DNA from: Podarcis erhardii
Lineage: Eukaryota
Reading direction: 5' to 3' (one strand)
NCBI GenBank assembly: GCA_964252035.1
Contig: OZ176202.1
DNA: 64,000 nucleotides
The notes beneath the pieces were generated by a model. It saw nothing but the letters and a program-made list of their open reading frames with translations, was not told where the DNA came from and ran no database searches. The translations under genes and the position numbers were made by a program. This document shows, piece by piece, positions 6,263-63,448 of the stretch (within the stretch, counting starts at the first letter, position 1; every line of letters starts with the position of its first letter).

Positions 6263-26867
<20,605 letters not shown>

Positions 26868-27232
26868 CCTCCCTGCAGAGACACAAACACTGGACAATTG
26901 GTACCTCACGACTGGGAATGTTCCCCTCTGCAATGTGGGACCCTTTCCTGATATCCGCAGCTTAACGAAAGATGCACTCCACACACGGCTGAGAGTCCAG
27001 CTTACAAATTGAGAACAGGTGACAGAACATTCTCTGTCCAGGACTGCCAAGGGCTGCAGTTAATCGCTCCAACACATCTCGGCATCAAGAAAGAACCCTG
27101 TGTGAGACCCTGGAGAGCTTGCTACAAGGCCATGTGGGCAGTGTAAGGCAGCTGAGCATTTAACACCGTGTCCTTCCCCTGTCCTGACTTTATTCAAGAC
27201 GTCCCCACCCTGTCCCAAGTGGCGTGGCCTAC

Positions 27233-35573: not shown

Positions 35574-35941
35574 GGTAAGGTAAAGGACCCCTGGATAGTT
35601 AAGTCCAGTCAAAGGTGACTATGGGGTTGCAGCGCTCATCTCACTTCAAGCCGAGGGAGTCGGCATTTGTTCACAGACAGCTTTCCAGGTCATGTGGCCA
35701 GCATGATTAAACTACTTCTGGCGCAACAGAACACCATGATGGAAGTCAGAGCACATGGAACCACTATTTACCTTCCCGTCGCAGCAGTACCTATTTATCT
35801 ACTAGTACTGGTGTGCTTTCAAACTGCTATGTTGGCAGAAGCTGGGACAGAGCAATGGGAGCTCATCCTGTCAGGCAGATTCAAACCGCTGACCTTCCGA
35901 TCAGCAAGCCCAAAAGAATCAGTGGTTTAGACCACAGCGCC
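35574..35941 (-). mobile_element. Sauria SINE, older diverged copy
   Basis: GGTAAGGTAAAGGACCCCTGG tail and body homologous to the copies at 6510 and 10407. Confidence 0.75.
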
Positions 35942-36968
35942 ATTCATAATTAACAATTGTTTGAATACTTGGAATGGCTGCAACAGTCACATTTTATTGC
36001 TTTTGTCTCCTATGATGCAAATTCCTCGTAACAATGTGAATGATGTCTCACTGTCACTTGGTTCTCATAACACTTGTAAAACTGGGCTTTGCAATAAGAC
36101 TTCTCTTAATCTGTCTTTTGCATTCTGTTAATGTTAAATGATCAGTTTGTTATTCGTCAGTTCTTGAATATCCAAAGGGCAACTGAAACACAAACCAATG
36201 GAGTTTCAATGTTTTTCTTTTAAAGAATCCCCCTCCCAACTTCTTTCTTGATATATGAAAATGGTCTAAATGTTCTAGTACTGCTATGTACAATTTTATA
36301 TCATTACCATTTATATTATAGTAACTATTGTACTTGAAACTGTTATGATAGTTTCCATCCTACCCATAATCCTGCTGGTCACTTCTCTCCTCGTCCCCTG
36401 GATCAGCCCCCCCCCCATGCACACAGAAATAGAGAGAAAATGTGTGCACAAATATACATTGCTAATTTGAGTAAAAGTCCAATTTAGTAGAATTAATATG
36501 AGTCTTAAGCACTGAAGAGGTTAAAGAGGAAATGGGAAAGAAGGTGACAGAATTACATCTGGGTTGACAAGTCTTTCTGAGATCTTTCAGTGGTGGGGAC
36601 ATAATTGGATAAAGGTTTACAGCAGAGGGCTTTTTCTATTTAAAGTATTTGCTGCTATAGCAAAGCCAGAGCAAAGCAAAGCAGTGCTGGTACTCTGAAT
36701 CTTCTATGGGGTTATACCACCCTACATTTAAGTTACAACTTATAATCCTTCTAAGTGCACTGGAGGGAAGGGTGAAGTACGGAGCCATGTTTTCTCCTCA
36801 CAATGTTTACTGAAGGATGCTACATCATAACATAACATCCTTTCTGAGATGCATATAAGGTGATATAGTCCTAGAGAGAAGAGTTGGGATGGAAGGATCT
36901 ATCAATTTTGGTTCTCTGTTCCCATTTTTCTAATCTGAAATGCAGTTTCTACAAATATTTGCTATTAA

Positions 36969-36970
<2 letters not shown>

Positions 36971-37010
<40 letters not shown>
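36971..37010. repeat. (AAT)n microsatellite
   Basis: Direct inspection. Confidence 0.9.
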
Positions 37011-37012
<2 letters not shown>

Positions 37013-37975
37013 ACCAGCACTTTAGTGTGCATTTCTTCTAATTAAGAGATTTTTGTATGCAGTTCTGACTAATGGACACATTTTTGCATTTTCCTCTAAT
37101 ATCACGTGTACGCTATTTTTACTAATATCTTAATTTTTATGCACTTTCTCCCAACAGAGGCATTTTTTAAATATATGCATTTGGTTGTTTGGCTGGAGAA
37201 CTGCATTGCAAAATTTGGATATGGGTGAAATTTAAAGGATGGCTGTGTTTCAGTTTTCATATTGTTTTGGAAAGTGAGAATTTGATAGATTCAGCATTCA
37301 ATGAGAACTGATCAAATTTCTCTCCTATCCCCTAGTCAAGTTTTTTATGTTGTGAACAACACAGAGATCTATAGATTTAGGGCAATATGCAAATTTAATG
37401 AACAAAACAAAACAAAACGCCACTATTGATTTGCTACAACAGTAAAAGCTATTTATAAAAAGGAGTGGTGCGGGGGAGAGAACTCTCTGCTGCTACCTTT
37501 TACATGTGAAAGTCTCCTACCTCTGAAAGGCTTCTGAGTTTTGACAGCCCATTGCTGGGAGTGAAAAAAGTTTCTCCCATCATTGCAGTCTGACAACAGA
37601 GCTGTGAAGGAGGGGGGGAACTGTAGATAATGATTTAGGATTAACCTTGAGCGGCTTAGAAAATTTAGAGATATCTTACCTTCTATTTCTGTGAATTTGG
37701 TAGAGTTGTTATATTGTATCAGCATTTAATTTAAACCAAAGACCCAAGAGACAAAACTTCTTAACAACTATTTTACTTTCCTTTAGACATAAAACAGTAA
37801 TTCACAACATAGGACTCATAAAATAGGAAGTTAATTGAAGACTTCCTGGTTTGTTTATTGGCTTGTACAAACGGAGATGCGAAGGGGATACATGCATGGG
37901 CAAAAGGCTTTTATATCCAGACTAATTAAGTAATTATTATCTGAACTCCCTTGGTGAGTGCACCTGTTATTTTAC

Positions 37976-38248
37976 CTGGATTGAGTTGCAAGTTATCTCC
38001 TCATTTTTTTCCATTTTCTGACTTGTCTTTTTCTGATGAGTCTTTATTTTCAGAAGACAGCTTCCAGGCTTTCTTAAAAATGTTAATCCCCAAGATCAGA
38101 GCTACCTTATCAAGCTCAGATTGCTTTTTATCTGCCGCATCAGAATGCATCTGTAGCTGAGCAACTTCCTTTGCTATCTTCTCTCGTAGTTGGTTCACTT
38201 CCACCAGCAAGGGATCTTTTGCCTTACGCATCTTGCGCATCATCTCCC
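37976..38248 (-). CDS. ZNF318: ZNF318b exon 6 (coiled coil) with in-frame TGA at 38003-38001
   Basis: Acceptor TAG|GG GAG ATG; EMMRKMRKAKDPLLVEVNQLREKIAKEV..SENGKK*; donor CAG|GTAAAA at 37975. Confidence 0.85.
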
Positions 38249-41200
38249 CTAAGCCAGTCAAAGTGGTAGAGTGGAAAGCATAAGAAAATCATTAATACAT
38301 GCAAAATTATTTTGGGTCATCAATTATAAGGTACCATTTTGGTATACCCAAAAGACAGAAGCAGGGTTTGCATTACTGTATGAAGAACTGACAGTTACTT
38401 GCAATGATTTGGTTGCACCCTAATTAATTCCCTGTTTAGGATAATACCCTGAGATAAAAACAAATTATGCAATGTCCAGCATCACCACTTTAGAGGATAG
38501 TAGGGGAAAAGGAAGAATAAAATGAGTGCAGTACCTTCCTGTTTTGTAAGTCTGTTTAACTCAACTGTCAGATAATGCAGTTTCTTCTGTCGTGCTTCTT
38601 GTTCAGCCTTCAATTTCTCTCTTTCCTCCAATACCTAGAAAGGTTTGTGAAGGGAAGGAAGGTATTAAAAATCCCCCTTTCATGGATTACAACCCAACTA
38701 AAACTACAACAATCATTGAAAGTAAATATTTTCATCTTATGCTTGCTAACTCAGCCTGTGATTCATTGCACCCAGCTCCTAACATACTAAATGCCACTAA
38801 ACATGAAACATACTAAAACTTACTAAAGCTTAAAAGCATGCAGGTCCTGCTTTCTGAACAAAATGTGTTCCCAGGAAATCATTTGTTAGGCGTATGTTCA
38901 CATAATGAGCTTATGATTTCCATTATTTCCTATGGGAACACTTCTATTTCGTAATTTGTTTGATCTCTCCCCCTCCCTCCCTGGTTTCTGCCCAAAAGGG
39001 CTGCTGCTGACCAGCAAAACATGAAGTAGGCAAACTCCATCTGTTTGGGTATCTGAATTTGCTGCTTGTGTAGTGAGGTTTGGGTATAATTCTTCGTGTT
39101 TGGCTGAGATTTCAGTTACCAAGTGTTCCAATAGCAGGACCTGCATGTAGATTGTATCCTTAAAGAGAGACTGTTTAAGACCTTAGGGTGAAGAGCAGGT
39201 AATAAACAATAACAACAATTAACAAGGTGTGTCTTGCCACAGTACCATAAAAACAGCCATTAGATAGCTCAAGACATTAGAGGTACATCCTGTTCAAAAA
39301 AACTATACATAATCCAATGTCAAATAAAAAGTGCAGAAAAAAGTTAAAATAAAATTGTATGTGCTTTGAACTTCTGTAAAACGGCAGACCTTAAATCCAA
39401 GAATGTAATCTTAAACAAGGAATCAATTCTGCACTTGGTTTCATATTTCATTATGTGTTAGGAAAAGATGTGCAGTAGAAAAAGTATTACAGTGGTACCT
39501 TGGGTTAAGAACTTAATTCGTTCCGGAGGTCCGTTCTTAACCTGAAACTGCTTTTAACCTGAGGTACCACTTTAGCTAATGGGGCCTCCCGCTGCCGCAC
39601 AATTTCTGTTCTCATCCTGAAGCAAAGTTCTTAACCCGAGGTACTATTTCTGGGTTAGTGGAGTCTGTAACCTGAAGTCTGTAACCTGAAGTGTTTGTAA
39701 CCCGAGGTACCACTGTATATATTTTTAAACTACAGTATAAGGCATTCAGAAGTAAGTCTATAAGGATACTATCCACTTCTCAATAGCAGCAACTACATTG
39801 CTGCTATGTGGAAAAGGAAATGTGGGGGGGGGGGGAGGAAGATACATCTGCTTGTAAGATAAACATTCTCACCTTTCGTTTCTGAACAGCTCGATTTCTA
39901 TCATCAGGTATTTTTTCCTTAGCGCCTTTGGGGGTAGGCTGAGGGAGCAATTTGGAATGAGGAGCAGAGAAAGGGGTTTGAACCATCATAGATGTATTTC
40001 TTTTGATATCACAAGTCCTTCGTGTTGTGGAAATTGTCTGAATAACTCTGACGTTGGAAACTGAATGATTTGGTGGCACTGTTGGAGTACCGTACTGAGG
40101 TGCATTTGGAAATTCAGGATCAGCCTGCTGGGGAGGAGCATACGTGGCCCAGCCAGAAGCTGCATAAGTGAAATACTGTCCATATGGATTATAGCCAGGA
40201 GGGGGCATTGTGGGAGGTGGATAGTTTTGTGGCAGGTGAGTTGCACCGAATGGTAAATAGAATGGAACACTATACTGGGGATATATGGGAGCAGGAAACA
40301 TATGAGGAAGACAAGGTGGGGCAGAGGGAATTGGAGATGCCATGGGAACAGCTTGCTCTTGTGGGAAATGATAATCTTGCCTTACAATTTTGCTTTCAGT
40401 GTGCTTAGAATGTGAAGCAGGAGACATCTCTTTAGATGGTGGGAAATAATCAGGAGAGGGAGAGTGGTTCCACCTTGACTCTGGATAATGAGTGTCACTT
40501 TTACTGCAGTGCCTTTCCTTAAACTCCATAGATTCTTTCCTAGGTTTATGAGAAGCCACTGAACGACGATCAGGAGAATGAGATGCTTTCTTCCCATGGA
40601 GGCGTTCCTGAGTGCGGGCAGCAAGCTTACCAATTTCAGCCACCCCAATGTCAAGACCAATAGTTTTGAGCAAGTCATAAATTTTCTCATGCTCTGGTCT
40701 GGATTCTTCTAAAGTGTCTGATTTTACAGACAGACTAGCAGGAGGAGAGTTTATTTTCTTCCTTCCATGTTCTTTATCACCACTCAATGTTATCCTTTGA
40801 ATAAAAATTGAGTCATCCCCATTATCACCATAAAGAAACTTCTCTTCAGCCTCAACATCATCAAGGAGGCTGTTCCTTCTCTTTTCTTGAGTGCTGGAAG
40901 AATCTGTTTTCATACTCAGAATGTGTGAAAAGCCATTCCCATCCTGGCTGGCTCTTTCATGGGGAAGCAAGAAGTAACTGTGCTGGTCTTCATGCTCTGA
41001 TGTGGACTCATGACACTCTCTCTGATTCAAAAAGCTCCCAAAATTCTGTTTATAATGGGAAATGTTTTGGTTTTGGCCAGAATGCAGCTTCCAATTATGC
41101 ACATTGCCTTCAGATGTTGTATTTGCAGGTTCTACATCTGCATTTTTATTGAACTGTTTGAGGAATTTCACCTCCTCAGTTGAAAAAGGAGCAATGCTGT

Positions 41201-50200: not shown

Positions 50201-52496
50201 ATGTGGATTTGAAAAACACTACATGCATCTAATGTTTATGTGCAGTGAAGACATCTGATAATATGTACACCAACAATGTAATGAGACAATGCAGCTAAAT
50301 TGACAATTGTACCATTTAGAAGAATAAGAAGCCTCCCAATTTATTGTCAGTGACACAAACCACCAAAAAACCACTGTCCACCCCCATTTTTCACAGAAAA
50401 GCGGTCAATTCTAGGAATGGGTTGTTTCTTAAAATTAATTAGTAATGGAACAGGGGGATAGCCCATCAGTCGTATAGGGCACTTCCAAGTTCTAATAGAC
50501 ATTTTTAGATAGGTGAACTTATCTCTTGGAAGCATTTATCTCCTCACTCTGCTTCCTCCTGCTATCTAGATAATCAAATATCAGTTTATTAAGCCAAGAT
50601 ATGTGCAGAGTCACAAATCCACATGCAGCTTGCTCAGCTCCCTGTTCCCAAAGCCAGGCATCAAAACTAACAGCAGTGTACTGTTACATCCAAACACTGG
50701 CTTCCAAACAAGACAGGAACTGGAAGCAAATTTTATTTCAATGGCTTCATTTTCTAGCCTCCTTGGGAGCCATTGACTAGCTTTCCAATTATTTGTTAAC
50801 AGAATAACTATGGTTAACTGGTTTCCTGGCATATTTCCCACTTGAACAAAGGGGGCAGGGGACCAAAGAGATTGCATGCGGGTTCAGTAAATTGATGCAT
50901 ATCTCAGCTCATTAATCATCCAAATGCAGCCTCTTTTCTTCTTCATCTCTCCCCCAGCCTTTAAGATCTTTAAGTATTTGGTTATTGACAAATATGAAAA
51001 GTGAAGCACAATCACTTCCAAAGGCTAATCTTCTCTGAAATTCACAGTTTGATCCTAACCATGACTATCCATTAGCTGTGTTGATTTTGGTTGAAATAAT
51101 TTTCAAGTAATCCAACCAGGTTTTAGGCGCCCAATATGCCTTAGCAGCCATCCTACTTTTCAAATTCATTCAACGATCCACGAACCTTTGGTAAAAATAA
51201 ACCTAAGCTCCTCCCCACCACAAGCCAAGTCTACAGGTATTGCCTTAACCTGTTAAGCGTATTTTGTGTGCGGGCAAAAATCACCGGCCACTTTCCTTCA
51301 TGTAGAAATGAAGGAAAGAAAGGAGCGTGCAGCTCAACCTGAGACGGGCCTACTCAGAAGTCTTACTAAATCCAAGGTGATTTCCTCTCAGATGTAGGAT
51401 ACACAGGGCTGTTGCACATTTAATGTTTCTCTACTTTGAGGCAAAGCTTCCCCTCCAGCTGTCATTAAGCCTTTCGACCTCCTTCGCATCACCACAGAGC
51501 CAAGGATGGGATCGCAGGTAAGATTGCTTAGGGATGCTCAAGGCTGCTGGGCGCATGCCCAGAAATGTGGGCCATGATATTATATATAACTAAGTTGGGG
51601 GCAGGAAAACGGCTGGCTATTCCAGTAAGTGGCAGTTAGGTGCAAGAGATGGGGGATGCTCCTTGGGGAAGGTACAGTGGTACCTCGGGTTAAGTACTTA
51701 ATTCGTTCCGGAGGTCCGTACTTAACCTGAAACTGTACTTAACCTGAAGCACCACTTTAGGTTGGGGCCTCCTGGTGCCGCTGCACCACCACAGCACGAT
51801 TTCTGTTCTCATCCTGAAGCAAAGTTCTTAACCTGAAGCACTATTTCTGGGTTAGCGGAGTCTGTAACCTGAAGTGTATGTAACCTGAAGCGTATGTAAC
51901 CCGAGGTACCACTGTACTGAGGCAAGCGGGCGGGCGTTACCCCTGGACGCTGGGGAGGCGGAAGAAGAAGAGTTTGGATTTGATATCCCGCTTTATCATT
52001 ACCCTAAGGTGTCTCAAAGCGGCTAACATTCTCCTTCCCCTTCCTCCCCCACAACAAACACTCTGTGAGGTGAGTGGGGCTGAGAGACTTCAGAAAAGTG
52101 TGACTGGCCCAAGGTCACCCAGCAGCTGCATGTGGAAGTGCGGAGACCCGAACCAGGTTCCCCAGATTAGGAGTCTACCGCTCTTAACCACTACACCACA
52201 CTGGCTCTCGGAGGCGGCTTAAATTCGCTCAGGCCGGGCCAATTCCCCAACCCGTAACCCCCTCAGCCTCCGCCGCCACGGGCAGAGCGTACCCGACTAC
52301 TGCGGCGCGAAGGCGGCGACCGGCGCGAAGAGCGTCCGCTGGAGGGCGAGCGGTGCCGGCGGCGGCTCCGCGGAGACCGGGAGCGCGAGCGCGAGCGGTG
52401 CGAGCTGCGGCCTCGAGCCGAACTGGAGCTGGATCCGCTGGCTTTGGACCGGCTGGAAGACGGCTTGCTCGAACGGCTGCTGCTGGCGCGGTGCAT
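38001..52496 (-). CDS. ZNF318: ZNF318-like paralogue (copy b), six exons, 909 aa as written, no zinc-finger exons
   Basis: Exons 52496-52293, 50074-49860, 45210-44658, 41282-39873, 38634-38535 and 38248-38001(TGA). All are GT-AG, phases 0/2/0/0/1, total 2730 nt. ZNF318 motifs: RDDLAD, DEDYR, MPKKSILKK, FLLPHERASQDGNGFSHILSM, EEKFLYGD, IYDLLKTIGLDIGVAEIGKLAARTQERLHGKK, EEREKLK..EARQKK, KDPLLVEV, KKQSELDKVALILGINIF. Confidence 0.85.
38535..38634 (-). CDS. ZNF318: ZNF318b exon 5
   Basis: 100 nt, TAG|GTATTG...GAAG|GTAC; VLEEREKLKAEQEARQKKLHYLTVELNRLTKQE(G), compared with recalled human VIEEREKLKNDREARQKKMYYLRTELERLHKQQG. Not in the ORF track. Confidence 0.9.
38870..39145 (-). repeat. Interspersed repeat, inverted copy of 34630-34990
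   Basis: See 34630-34990; accounts for the spurious ORF 38898-39146. Confidence 0.7.
39490..39715. mobile_element. Tc1/mariner-type MITE
   Basis: TA-CAGTGGTACCT ... AGGTACCACTG-TA; same family as 51675 and 59511. Confidence 0.85.
39873..41282 (-). CDS. ZNF318: ZNF318b exon 4 (1410 nt)
   Basis: TTTAG|CCT GAA GTC...AAA CGA AAG|GTGAGA; open for 470 codons and contains HERASQDG and LLKTIGLDIGVAEI. Confidence 0.93.
41521..42610 (-). mobile_element. CR1 LINE 3' fragment, interrupted by a MITE
   Basis: CTGCTGGATCCAGCCAGTGGCCCACCTAG..CCTGTTCTCATAGTGGCCAAC resembles the reverse complement of a CR1 3' end. The sequence GGAGAAG-TA-CTTCCTTTTGTCTGTCTTGAATCT is split at the TA by the MITE. Confidence 0.6.
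41860..42461. mobile_element. Tc1/mariner-type MITE with GC-rich internal tandem repeats
   Basis: TA-CCGTATTTTTCGCCCCATAGGACGCAC ... GTGCGTCCTATAGGGCGAAAAATACGG-TA. Confidence 0.88.
44658..45210 (-). CDS. ZNF318: ZNF318b exon 3 (553 nt)
   Basis: TTATTAG|G GAT GAC TTG...GTG CAG|GTTTGG; (R)DDLADGPIF..DEDYRFRDDFLHQSDYS..YRPNEITAMPKKSILKK..PSVQ. Confidence 0.92.
45585..45665. mobile_element. Short Penelope-like retroelement terminus
   Basis: CTGAAGAAGTGTGCATGCACACGAAAGCTCATACC..TTAGTTGGTCTTTAAGGTGCTACTGG resembles squamate Penelope ends (from recall). Confidence 0.4.
46839..47576. mobile_element. Tc1/mariner-type MITE with ~110-bp internal repeats and a perfect palindrome
   Basis: TA-CCGTATTTTTCGC ... 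GCGAAAAATACAG-TA; opposite orientation to the copy at 41860. Confidence 0.85.
47709..48390. mobile_element. hAT-type non-autonomous DNA transposon
   Basis: 13-bp TIRs CAGGGCTGTCTTA / TAAGACAGCCCTG; no exact 8-bp TSD. Confidence 0.7.
48995..49100. repeat. Long inverted repeat (50-bp arms, 6-nt loop)
   Basis: AACACTTTCACACTGAACAATGAAACTTCCCGGTTGCTTCTACTTCTAGA-agtggc-TCTAGAAGTAAAAGCAACTAGGAAGTTTCATTGTTCAGTGTGAAAGTGTT, 3 mismatches. Confidence 0.9.
49860..50074 (-). CDS. ZNF318: ZNF318b exon 2, built from a 21-bp coding minisatellite
   Basis: TTTTAATTGTAG|AGA CGC TCT CCA GGC ... GGG AAC AG|GTAAGG, 215 nt, phase 0 in and phase 2 out as exons 1 and 3 require; RRSPG-(KRSHSPG)7-KRSHSPD-KRSPSLSDGN(R). 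Confidence 0.85.
49896..50063. repeat. 21-bp minisatellite, 8 units (GGAGAGTGAGAGCGCTTGCCC)
   Basis: Seven identical units plus one ending CCT; counted from the sequence and consistent with the ESESACP repeats in the ORF track. Confidence 0.95.
51675..51914. mobile_element. Tc1/mariner-type MITE
   Basis: TA-CAGTGGTACCTCGGGTTA ... TAACCCGAGGTACCACTG-TA. Confidence 0.88.
51960..52209 (-). mobile_element. Squam3-type tRNA-derived SINE
   Basis: Minus strand reads GAGAGCCAGTGTGGTGTAGTGGTTAAGAGCGGTAGACTC (A/B-box head) ... GATATCAAATCCAAACTC(TTC)n tail, with a GGAGGCGG TSD. Confidence 0.8.
52293..52496 (-). CDS. ZNF318: ZNF318b coding exon 1
   Basis: MHRASSSRSSKPSS...RSPSSGRSSRRSPPSRRSSR (68 codons). 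Shares CCGACTACTGCGGCGCG and CTTTGGACCGGCTGGA with 1654-1863 and has the same CGG|GTACG donor. Confidence 0.85.
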
Positions 52497-61003: not shown

Positions 61004-63448
61004 TTACAGCTCAGTCGTTTTCCTGGGTTCTATCAAGACCGTACTCAACATGCCCACTTGGCACTCTTGGTCCTGGAGTTTCCTTGCAGACTGCGAGGGG
61101 CTTTGGCACCTCCGGCGCCCCCTCTGCCAGTTCTTCAGCAGCACCAACACAGTTACCAAGACTAGGAGGGCCGTGAGCAGCCCAAACACCAGCACTAAAA
61201 TCAGCTGCGACTGACTCAGCCCCGAGTCCTGCTGAGTCACCACCTCTTTCACGGAGATCAAGAGCCCTCCCCCGTTTGATTTCTCACTATAGGTAGTGAC
61301 CCGCTTCCCAGTCACCACAACCCGGACGGGCTCAGACTGGGTTGTCCAAGGGTTGCTGCTGGTCGTGCTTCTCACGACGTCGTTGCCGTGCCCCTTGGGA
61401 TCAGCGTGAAACGCGGTGACCCACGTCGGCTCGGGAGCAAGGAGCTCACAGGTCTTGCCGACAAAGCCCTCGGGACACAGGCAATCGAAATCGTTGACGC
61501 GGTCGTAGCACTTTGCCCCGTTTCTGCACGGCTGGCTGGCGCAGTCGTCAACATTGATGCTGCAGAAACGCCCTTCAAAGCCAGTAGGGCATTGGCAGGA
61601 GAAGCGGTTGATGCCGTCAAGGCAGGTGGCACCGTTGGCACAGGGACGCATCAGGCAATCGTCGACGTCAATCTCGCAGTGGGTGCCAATGAATCCTGCC
61701 AGGCACTTGCAGGTGTAGTTGTTAGCAAAGCCATTCTGGTCCAGGCACTCTCCGCCATTCTTGCAAGGGGACCTGAAAGGAGAGAATGGGGACCAATCAC
61801 AACATCCATATGGGCCGTCCTACATTTTATTCATCTGTTTAAATACCCCTTAACCATTAGCATTTCTAATAGCAGTCATTATTATTATTTTATTATTTGT
61901 ACCCCACCCATCTGACTGGGTTGCCCCAGCCACTCTGAGTGGCTTCTAAGTGCACGTAAAAGGTGCATGCAAAAATAAGCCACACAGGAAAAAATAACAA
62001 CAAAAGTCGTCATAAAACTGAACGCTGCCTTGAAATCCTTGTTCGTGAAATGGTGCGTTTTAAAGCCTTTTACGGCTGATCCTATACGCGTTCACTCAGA
62101 AGTAAGCCCTACTGAGCTTAATGGGACTTATTCCTAGGCAAAGGACTGGAGCCTTTAAAAGGTTTTGCTCCTTGCGCCTGCCTTTCCTCCCATCTATTTC
62201 TGCTAGGATCTCTCACCCTGCCTTATCACATGGCCCCGTCTTCAGCTCACAGTTCTTTCCATGGAATCCTTCAAGGCACAGGCAGGAATATTCCCCATCT
62301 CGGTCGTAGACGCACTGGGCTCCATTCTGGCACGGGGTCTGGTGCTCACAGACATGCACGTCTGAAAGAGATGGGGGGGGGGAGAGGAGGACGAGGAGAA
62401 AATGCAGGTCAAAAGTACTCAGGGCTGGTTTTTCATGCCAGACACCCACACCCACACATAAAAGTTCTCTCTTTTTTAAAATTTACTGTGATAATGGAGG
62501 CTGTACAAAGAAAAGGTGGCCAGCTAGCACAGCATCCTCCTTCGCAGTGTCCAACCAGATGTCCCCTGCTCTTCAGAGGCACAAGGCCACTGATTCTGAA
62601 GGTGGAAGTGGGCTCCTGTATCGGAGCAGAAGCTGCCGCCTTACTTCCTCCTAGCCCAGCACTGTGTACAGTTGTACCTTGGATCCCAAATGCCTTGGTA
62701 CTCAGACACCTTGGCTCCCAAACGCCGCAAACCCGGAAGTGAGTGTTCTGGTTTGTGAACATTCTTTGGAACCCAAACGTCCAATGGGGCTTCCGATTGG
62801 CTGCAGGAGCTTCCTGCAGCCAATCAAAAGCCGTGCTTTGGTTTCCAAACGAAAGGACTTCCAGAACGGATTCCGTTCGACTTCCAAGGTATTCTGACTA
62901 GCAGTGGTTCTCCAAGGCCTTAGGACAACTTCATGTAGCTGGGAAGTATTGGAGTCAATAGCAAAAGTGGTTGTTTTCTCCAGGGAGGCCTCAAAGCAGA
63001 AAATGGGAAGACGGCCGAATTACTGCTGCTAATAAGTCTGTGCGGTTCTTCTGTTAAGGCTGAATTGCTGTTGTTCGGAAATGGCTTCATTAATCAGTAG
63101 TGAACGTGTTGTGCCTGGAGAGGACCCGAGTTTCAGCCTTTCAAGGCAGCAGCAGCAGAAGCTATTGTCTGAAACTCTGGAGAGCAGGTACCAGCCCATG
63201 TGTTCTGGCTTGGTATAAGGCAGCTTCCCAATAAGCTTCTACTGCAGTGCCCTCCTTTCCCTGTCGTCCCCACTCTCCTCAATAAGTCCCCACCCTGTTC
63301 CAAGTGGAGCGACGCACCTTTCTTGCACAGCTTGCCAGCCCAGCCACTTTGGCAGATGCATTGCCAGGGTTGGTGGCACGTTCCATGCTTGCAGCCTGGC
63401 ATCCTCACACACTGTTCACAGTATTCCCCTTCCCAGCCTTTGTCACAC
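61004..63448 (-). CDS. DLK2: DLK2 (protein delta homolog 2 / EGFL9), last three coding exons; 5' exons beyond the window
   Basis: Exons 63448-63318 (131 nt), 62361-62217 (145 nt) and 61772-61004 (769 nt, stop), with compatible phases. EGF repeats ([18 protein letters not shown]; [21 protein letters not shown]), LLISVKEVV, a TM helix ([23 protein letters not shown]) and the tail [15 protein letters not shown]. Confidence 0.95.
62669..62896. mobile_element. Tc1/mariner-type MITE related to 24188-24414
   Basis: TA-CAGTTGTACCTTGG start, shared GGCTCCCAAACGCCGCAAACCCGGAAGT core, degenerate right TIR. Confidence 0.7.

Follow-up and report, generated by a model that had tools for sequence, protein, structure and literature searches.

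A comparable described system is that of mouse Zfp318, a single gene with two products, of which the short one bears one U1-like finger and the long one bears two (PMC11520953). Upon overexpression, the short and long forms of mouse ZFP318 have opposite effects on the androgen receptor (PMC11520953). Mice require Zfp318 to express IgD and for the fertility of males (PMC11520953, citing Enders 2014 and Pioli 2014). Mammalian short ZNF318 models retain the first finger. Human SRGAP2C is a truncated paralogue that arose by partial segmental duplication; it kept the N-terminal interaction domain, lost the C-terminal effector and can thereby act on its parent. In the literature searched, we found no published account of a ZNF318-like paralogue in squamates, the lizard-linked mention of ZNF318 belonging to unrelated population genomics.

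We analysed a stretch of 64,000 nucleotides from Podarcis erhardii (contig OZ176202.1; hereafter, the window), which contains a ZNF318-like gene, designated ZNF318b. Its product has in common with full-length vertebrate ZNF318/ZFP318 proteins (approximately 2000–2700 aa) an RS-rich N-terminus, a disordered region and the ZNF318_helical domain, and its exons 5 and 6 are 64–80% identical to the snake full-length ZNF318. Unlike these proteins, it is without both U1/matrin-type fingers and the C-terminal half, and shows a deletion of four residues in the helical domain. As with SRGAP2C, the N-terminal part is kept and the C-terminal part lost, although ZNF318b is much older and predates the split of lacertids and snakes. 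Compared with the mouse short form (TZF, approximately 900 aa), ZNF318b is of similar size and is also a short N-terminal product beside a long form. However, TZF is a splice variant that keeps one finger, with an alternative 3' exon following it, whereas ZNF318b is a separate gene with no finger and no finger exon. The first-pass annotation had proposed that it could act as a genomically fixed short form, which is plausible, but ZNF318b is no equivalent of TZF, since one finger is retained in the latter (PMC11520953).

ZNF318b is located on the minus strand between DLK2 (61–63.5 kb, same strand) and the 3' end of ABCC10, which is encoded on the plus strand, with its first long open frame from 7368 and a coding end at approximately 26.9 kb as judged by comparison with P. 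lilfordi and Elgaria. The coding part of exon 1 (52496–52293, ATG at 52496) was identified by tblastn with residues 1–73 of the P. muralis model P0142 (94.5% identity) and ends at a donor site. Exon 2 (50074–49860), containing arginine/serine heptad repeats, was delimited by homology and splice sites, and exon 3 (45213–44658, 556 nt) by tblastn and splice sites. Exon 4 (41282–39873; 1410 nt, 470 codons) is mostly disordered and was defined from its open frame, splice sites, RNA contigs and homologues. The helical domain starts in exon 5 (38634–38535, 100 nt), which was delimited by its splice sites and by the RNA joints 38247->38534 and 38632->39871, a placement of the joints one or two positions further on fitting equally well. 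Together, mapped exons 1–6 amount to 910 codons up to the TGA, in keeping with an initial estimate of about 909 aa.

Repeats are also present in and around the gene. A very high-copy interspersed repeat occupies 39480–39870, in intron 4, and 35600–35990, downstream of exon 6; its summed contig depth in DNA runs reaches 10^5–10^6, with joints from 35942 to about 39488. GC-rich repeated units lie at around 41.8–42.7, 46.8–47.5 and 25.7–26.0 kb, with the same translated motif in several places, and probably constitute one SINE-like family found in ZNF318-like introns and near ABCC10.

The public databases contain three models of Podarcis for this gene, named zinc finger protein 318-like: XP_028580143.2 from P. 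muralis (904 aa), XP_053238819.1 from P. raffonei (909 aa) and CAI5770719.1 from P. lilfordi (895 aa). The window exons, searched singly and not as a joined protein, were around 96% identical to these three models at the protein level, with an exact match to none, as befits a fourth species of Podarcis. Precomputed matches to PF27978 (ZNF318_helical) exist for the orthologous Podarcis models, and window exons 5 and 6 align with the invariant residues of ZNF318_helical, indicating that they belong to this domain. The RS-rich N-terminus encoded by exons 1 and 2 and the linkage to ABCC10 and DLK2 are those of the ZNF318 family; conversely, the U1/matrin-type C2H2 finger of ZNF318/ZFP318 is missing from ZNF318b. 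ZNF318b thus corresponds to the paralogue that squamate annotations call zinc finger protein 318-like. The homonymous models, for instance those from P. muralis, P. raffonei, Python, Elgaria and Rhineura, represent the same gene, with the same exons, a shared position between DLK2 and ABCC10, the same deletion and no fingers, all of these records being automatic models only.

Exon 6 (38248–37976, minus strand; 273 nt) is the last coding exon, bordered by ...ggcttag/GGGGAG at 38248 and ...ATCCAG/gtaaaa at 37976 and supported by these AG/GT borders, an RNA joint and homology to exon 6 of ZNF318. It encodes the end of the helical domain and a disordered tail; its frame covers a conserved coiled-coil-like stretch and terminates at ...SENGKK*. 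On the minus strand, positions 38012–38001 read GGA AAA AAA TGA, so that a run of seven A (A7, 38010–38004), identical across four Podarcis assemblies and with one base more than in other squamates, is directly followed by the TGA of the main product (38003–38001), 25 nt short of the donor of exon 6. This in-frame stop before the CAG/GT donor had been described in the first-pass annotation and was confirmed on the letters of the window, which is free of N runs. We also reproduced its reading without one A, in which the frame continues as ...NEEITCNSIQ and reaches the donor in phase 0, a frame also present in model P0191 from P. lilfordi. For the C-terminal 181 residues, AlphaFold2 predicts two long helices (pLDDT >90) followed by a tail (pLDDT approximately 40–45) that holds the stop.

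Altogether, we consider it likely that the TGA is a real and fixed stop in an old, fingerless partial duplicate of ZNF318 that has been kept by selection. Four other explanations were weighed against this reading, concerning the fate of the transcript, the decay of the gene, the bypass of the stop and the accuracy of the assembly.

Our read evidence consisted of assembled Logan contigs of public runs, in which depth figures are contig means. Runs X18 and X22 contain RNA, because they carry the GT-AG joints of exons 4 to 6, which are absent from the DNA runs. In X22, a 1157-nt contig joins exons 4, 5 and 6 and terminates precisely with the last base of exon 6, 37976. The final 30 bases of this exon recur in a second contig that extends into the intron to 37612, and a further one covers 37608 to 37022, adjoining an ATT microsatellite. 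Contigs built with 31-base words break where two continuations exist, and the break at 37976 therefore indicates another continuation besides read-through at the exon 6 donor, presumably a spliced form. The exon contig had a mean depth of approximately 97 and the read-through contig one of approximately 15, values that are a hint only and unfit to rank gene parts. RNA contigs stop at the (ATT)n microsatellite (36958–37021), with almost none below, and the read-through transcript may end near it. Poly(A)-type signals were observed in this intron, with ATTAAA at 37399 and 37730 and AATAAA at 37859.

Two further exons are suggested downstream. The tail of P. lilfordi P0191 aligns with exon 7' (27972–27926, minus strand; 47 nt), which would be non-coding in the main form and has a polypyrimidine-AG acceptor and a GTATGG donor. 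The second, exon 8' (27363–27189, minus strand), would be part of a relic of DLK2, consisting of an EGF exon with its intron flanks and an in-frame TAA (27404–27099, minus strand, near the ABCC10 end). Model P0191 ends in this relic, which contains an old donor after 27233 and an AATAAA at 27194–27189. P0191 enters exon 7' in frame only by way of a 61-nt internal intron (38105–38045), which is implausible. Because this intron is absent in the RNA contigs and the stops of the extension differ between species, exon 7' and the relic exon are best read as 3' untranslated sequence. Some transcripts thus read through the exon 6 donor, and others would be spliced to non-coding exons, among them the DLK2 relic. 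With approximately 350 nt between the relic and the ABCC10 coding end, the transcripts of ZNF318-like and ABCC10 probably have 3' ends that overlap in antisense.

If the exon 6 donor forms the last junction, the TGA would lie 25 nt before it; use of both exon 7' and exon 8' would raise this distance to 72 nt. Nonsense-mediated decay (NMD) is usually avoided by stops closer than 50–55 nt to the last exon junction. The value of 72 nt exceeds this limit, and therefore the fully spliced form may be sensitive to NMD; the read-through form would escape. The first-pass annotation had expected escape with exon 6 as the penultimate exon. The 25 nt between TGA and donor were correct, but exon 6 is not clearly penultimate, because P0191 and the splice sites add two exons. 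The good splice sites of exons 7' and 8' and the contig break at the exon 6 donor would also suit a transcript serving chiefly as a regulated NMD target or as a non-coding product, with its TGA 72 nt before the last of two junctions. We regard this as unlikely, although it is the strongest of the four alternatives, since selection on the coding frame (see below) implies that the protein is made and a read-through form that avoids the downstream junctions exists.

To evaluate selection, we estimated dN/dS on 769 codons of exons 3–6, analysing each exon separately and summing the counts. Values were 0.42–0.98 among the four Podarcis (the window, P. muralis, P. raffonei and P. lilfordi), 0.54 against Elgaria, 0.48 against Python and 0.58 against Gekko. 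Helical exons 5 and 6 reached 0.15–0.35 in deep comparisons and exon 3 showed 0.1–0.25, whereas exon 4 gave 1.5–2.0 among the window, P. raffonei and P. lilfordi, from small counts, and its disordered region is possibly under fast or adaptive evolution. No stop and no indel were found in exons 3–6 among the four Podarcis and, in pairwise comparisons, there were no gap openings in 2.3 kb of exon as compared with 2.9–5.1 per kb in introns of the same gene. Additionally, more than 20 squamate species preserve an intact frame of around 770–910 codons, and exons 4, 5 and 6 are joined at canonical GT-AG sites in RNA contigs. These results indicate that the open frame of ZNF318b is held by selection (dN/dS of about 0.5), with much of the protein evolving fast, and bear out the initial description of an otherwise intact paralogue.

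Truncation by a premature-looking stop, the fairly high overall dN/dS (0.4–1.0 among Podarcis, and above 1 for exon 4 in some pairs) and 3' exons derived from a dead DLK2 are also what might be expected of a decaying pseudogene, that is, a dead partial duplicate that is still transcribed. This explanation is a little less probable than an NMD target. Its frame would have to be intact in more than 20 squamates since before the split of lacertids and toxicoferans (snakes, anguimorphs), with zero indels in 2.3 kb of exon against 3–5 per kb in introns, with an omega of 0.15–0.35 in the helical exons over deep time and with correct splicing of exons 4-5-6. Both dN/dS and the presence of RNA, which the first-pass annotation had named as the way to recognize a decaying copy, thus argue against one.

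A third explanation is a bypass of the stop, through +1 slippage of the ribosome at AAA-TGA or removal of the 61-nt intron at 38105–38045, yielding a longer protein that continues through exon 7' into the DLK2 relic. Model P0191 is constructed in this way, and the shifted frame is open for about 50 codons in the window, into the EGF relic. Nevertheless, the exon 6 RNA contigs are continuous across 38105–38045, and an intron of 61 nt is unusually short for a vertebrate. Furthermore, the extension ends differently in the window and in P. lilfordi, a TAG having arisen early in the relic, and it is therefore not conserved coding sequence. Such a bypass is very improbable, and we retain the TGA as the end of the protein.

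The stop was examined in assemblies, models and contigs. When exon 6 was aligned in the window, P. muralis, P. raffonei and P. lilfordi, all four read GGAAAAAAATGA, and the three public models (XP_028580143.2, XP_053238819.1 and CAI5770719.1) all terminate at ...SENGKK. A DNA contig from organism A, possibly derived from the source sample, showed zero differences over 37245–38880. A contig from organism B spans 37192–39512 and contains eight gap letters, located at 37612, 37909, 38410, 38661 and 39208, with none of the eight inside exon 6; the RNA contigs from X18 and X22 also span exon 6 free of gaps. The early stop is thus real, with A7 and TGA common to four Podarcis genomes, and is not a sequencing slip. 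Homopolymers are prone to errors, and one A fewer would restore likeness to the tails of other squamates, but a true genome with A6 and a frame open to the end of exon 6 has next to no probability and counts as already refuted at the species level, given A7 and TGA in four separate assemblies, gapless DNA contigs of two organisms and RNA contigs, and a gain of just about ten residues before conserved coding sequence ends. Hence, of the initial alternatives of a real truncation or a 1-nt homopolymer indel, the truncation stood and the assembly error did not, an ordinary outcome for a stop already present in public gene models. As the evidence consists of assembled contigs, a rare A6 allele may exist beside A7.

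Alignment of the exon 6 tail with Elgaria, Python and Gekko kuhli showed one additional base in the A-rich stretch of Podarcis and a donor (AAG or CAG, then GTA) that is kept in all four. From these comparisons, the extra A is a genuine frameshift fixed in a lineage, rather than an assembly indel, and dates to after the split of lacertids and amphisbaenians and before the divergence of the four Podarcis species. The insertion of an A in the run, in the lineage leading to Podarcis, shifted the frame onto the TGA located 25 nt before the donor. Its cost is only about ten residues of disordered tail, a minor and recent trimming. Rhineura, a worm lizard and the nearest relative with a model, has the old frame and a stop three codons before the exon end. 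The ZNF318-like proteins of Python and Varanus terminate in ...SSENNL and ...KSKSEK, respectively, and in elapids the stop is the last codon of exon 6. In Elgaria and Gekko, exon 6 is open throughout and a stop is expected 3–7 codons into the intron. With no coding sequence further downstream, the frame of every lineage thus ends at or just past the exon 6 terminus, at codons that differ.

The stop is not the cause of the missing fingers; in relatives that retain the old frame, the protein likewise terminates within a few codons of the exon 6 end. We searched both strands of the 64 kb by tblastn with finger-bearing ZNF318 proteins from bird, snake, coelacanth and mammals, obtaining matches to exons 2–6 and none to a finger or C-terminal exon. 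Likewise, the 1,240 residues downstream of exon 6 in full-length ZNF318 of Protobothrops had no match in the window or in eight related loci, of which those from P. lilfordi, Elgaria and Protobothrops read through to ABCC10. The tblastn search with the C-terminal part, suggested in the first-pass annotation, thus matched no intact finger exon downstream of exon 6, and its claim that the protein is fingerless in either frame held for the whole window, including 28–38 kb. A C..C...H...H motif was found in none of the ZNF318-like proteins examined. It is most likely that ZNF318b never had fingers, the duplication having taken the front part of the gene alone.

Two gecko and anguimorph models have longer tails. 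The tail of Elgaria model P0099 (residues 1120–1429) scans as GDSL/SGNH-esterase-like, and that of Eublepharis model P0012 is like it, as judged by eye only; neither has a match to ZNF318. These tails, which we assume may be transposon-derived, may be exonised sequence or an annotation artefact.

The origin of ZNF318b was examined from synteny and from remnants in the window. The order DLK2, ZNF318-like and ABCC10, with the last two tail to tail, is alike in Podarcis (the window and P. lilfordi), Elgaria (Anguimorpha) and Protobothrops (a viper); no DLK2 or ABCC10 was found within 10 kb of the Python and Gekko loci. At the other end of ABCC10, and head-to-head with it, homology identified the first exon of a canonical-type copy, ZNF318a (1863–1603, minus strand). 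This exon is 72% identical to the N-terminus of the snake full-length ZNF318, as compared with 62% for exon 1 of ZNF318b, and 54.5% identical to the N-terminus of ZNF318b (as P. muralis P0142); its region shows 78.7% DNA identity to 52276–52428. Judging from this first exon alone, Podarcis would have a finger-bearing ZNF318a, the remainder of which would lie to the left of the window. Residues 1–79 of the Phrynosoma model P0098 match the antisense of the ZNF318 first exons, at 1658–1864 and 52297–52491 on the plus strand, and its N-terminus is likely an annotation artefact because it matches this antisense strand.

The DLK2 relic shows approximately 72% nucleotide identity with DLK2 at about 63489–63166, and 58% amino-acid identity (tblastx, 74 codons). 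It is known from Podarcis alone, with none downstream of the gene in Elgaria or Protobothrops, and no second ABCC10 remnant was found at 50.1–60.9 kb. A second DLK2-like match, at 24184–24354, was discarded as part of the relic because it is inside ABCC10; this sequence, in an ABCC10 intron, and 62665–62850, in a DLK2 intron, are 73% identical and probably represent a shared repeat.

The relic and the ZNF318a first exon in the window fit a partial tandem duplication broken in intron 6 of ZNF318. Synteny, these remnants, a shared four-residue deletion and the trees (see below) all argue for one ancient partial duplication. In this most likely model, an ancient tandem duplication of the block ZNF318-ABCC10-DLK2, with one breakpoint in that intron, would have given the second copy a promoter and exons 1–6, which encode the RS-rich N-terminus followed by the long disordered region and an entire ZNF318_helical domain with its two helices. 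The second copy would have begun without both U1/matrin-type fingers and the long C-terminal exon, because the breakpoint left the finger exons out. The upstream copy would have stayed complete and the downstream copy would have read into the first DLK2; later, the second ABCC10 would have been lost and the first DLK2 would have decayed to a relic exon. We infer the breakpoint, the usage of the 3' exons and the function of ZNF318b, and the breakpoint model draws on the relic of one genus together with synteny. The duplication predates the lacertid/snake split, and a rough guess from the approximately 72% DNA identity between paralogues and an assumed rate would put it at well over 100 million years.

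A deletion of four residues just before DPLLVE was present in 14 of 14 non-gecko ZNF318-like proteins of alignment A1, from lacertids, Rhineura, anguimorphs, iguanians and snakes. It was absent from the snake full-length proteins, tuatara, birds, mammals and coelacanth in A1, and from the Anolis sagrei full-length protein, checked outside A1. The window reads RKMRKAKDPLL at this site, and shows both the deletion and the frame ending at or near the exon 6 end that distinguish the squamate ZNF318-like proteins. Full-length, two-finger ZNF318 proteins exist in snakes and in Anolis sagrei (2676 aa); the latter was recovered by an exhaustive search, an earlier protein search with a ceiling of 2500 aa having left out the lizard canonical proteins.

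A first tree, without a lizard full-length protein, was a polytomy, and the AU test on it did not reject a single clade of the snake canonical and snake ZNF318-like proteins (p = 0.61). In the tree with the Anolis sagrei canonical protein, the full-length proteins formed a clade with SH-aLRT 84 and the ZNF318-like proteins of iguanians, anguimorphs and snakes another with SH-aLRT 91; lacertoid and gecko copies had ambiguous placement. Gekko kuhli contains two ZNF318-type models (P0009 and P0015) on one chromosome, which group together in trees, and P0009 has an insertion at the site where the other ZNF318-like proteins have the four-residue deletion. The history of ZNF318 in geckos may thus differ from that in other squamates.

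With respect to function, what is seen is that ZNF318b retains a complete helical domain, and the role of a dominant-negative or fixed antagonist is plausible. It is possible, if tentative, that ZNF318b binds ZNF318a or its partners through the RS region and the helical domain, without binding nucleic acid, and so modulates or competes with the full-length protein. It is more doubtful that the fingerless squamate gene is a built-in antagonist or partner of the full-length protein that tunes IgM/IgD processing or germ-cell and androgen-receptor programmes. If true, this would be a gene-encoded counterpart of what mammals achieve by splice forms.

For annotation, the stop should be kept and the gene labelled as a fingerless ZNF318 paralogue, rather than as a damaged ZNF318. 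A natural ZNF318 without fingers offers a ready means of studying the action of the N-terminal and helical parts in isolation. ZNF318b would also have recycled its 3' end from a dead neighbour gene, DLK2, and is a clean case of a front-half gene duplicate kept under selection across lizards and snakes.
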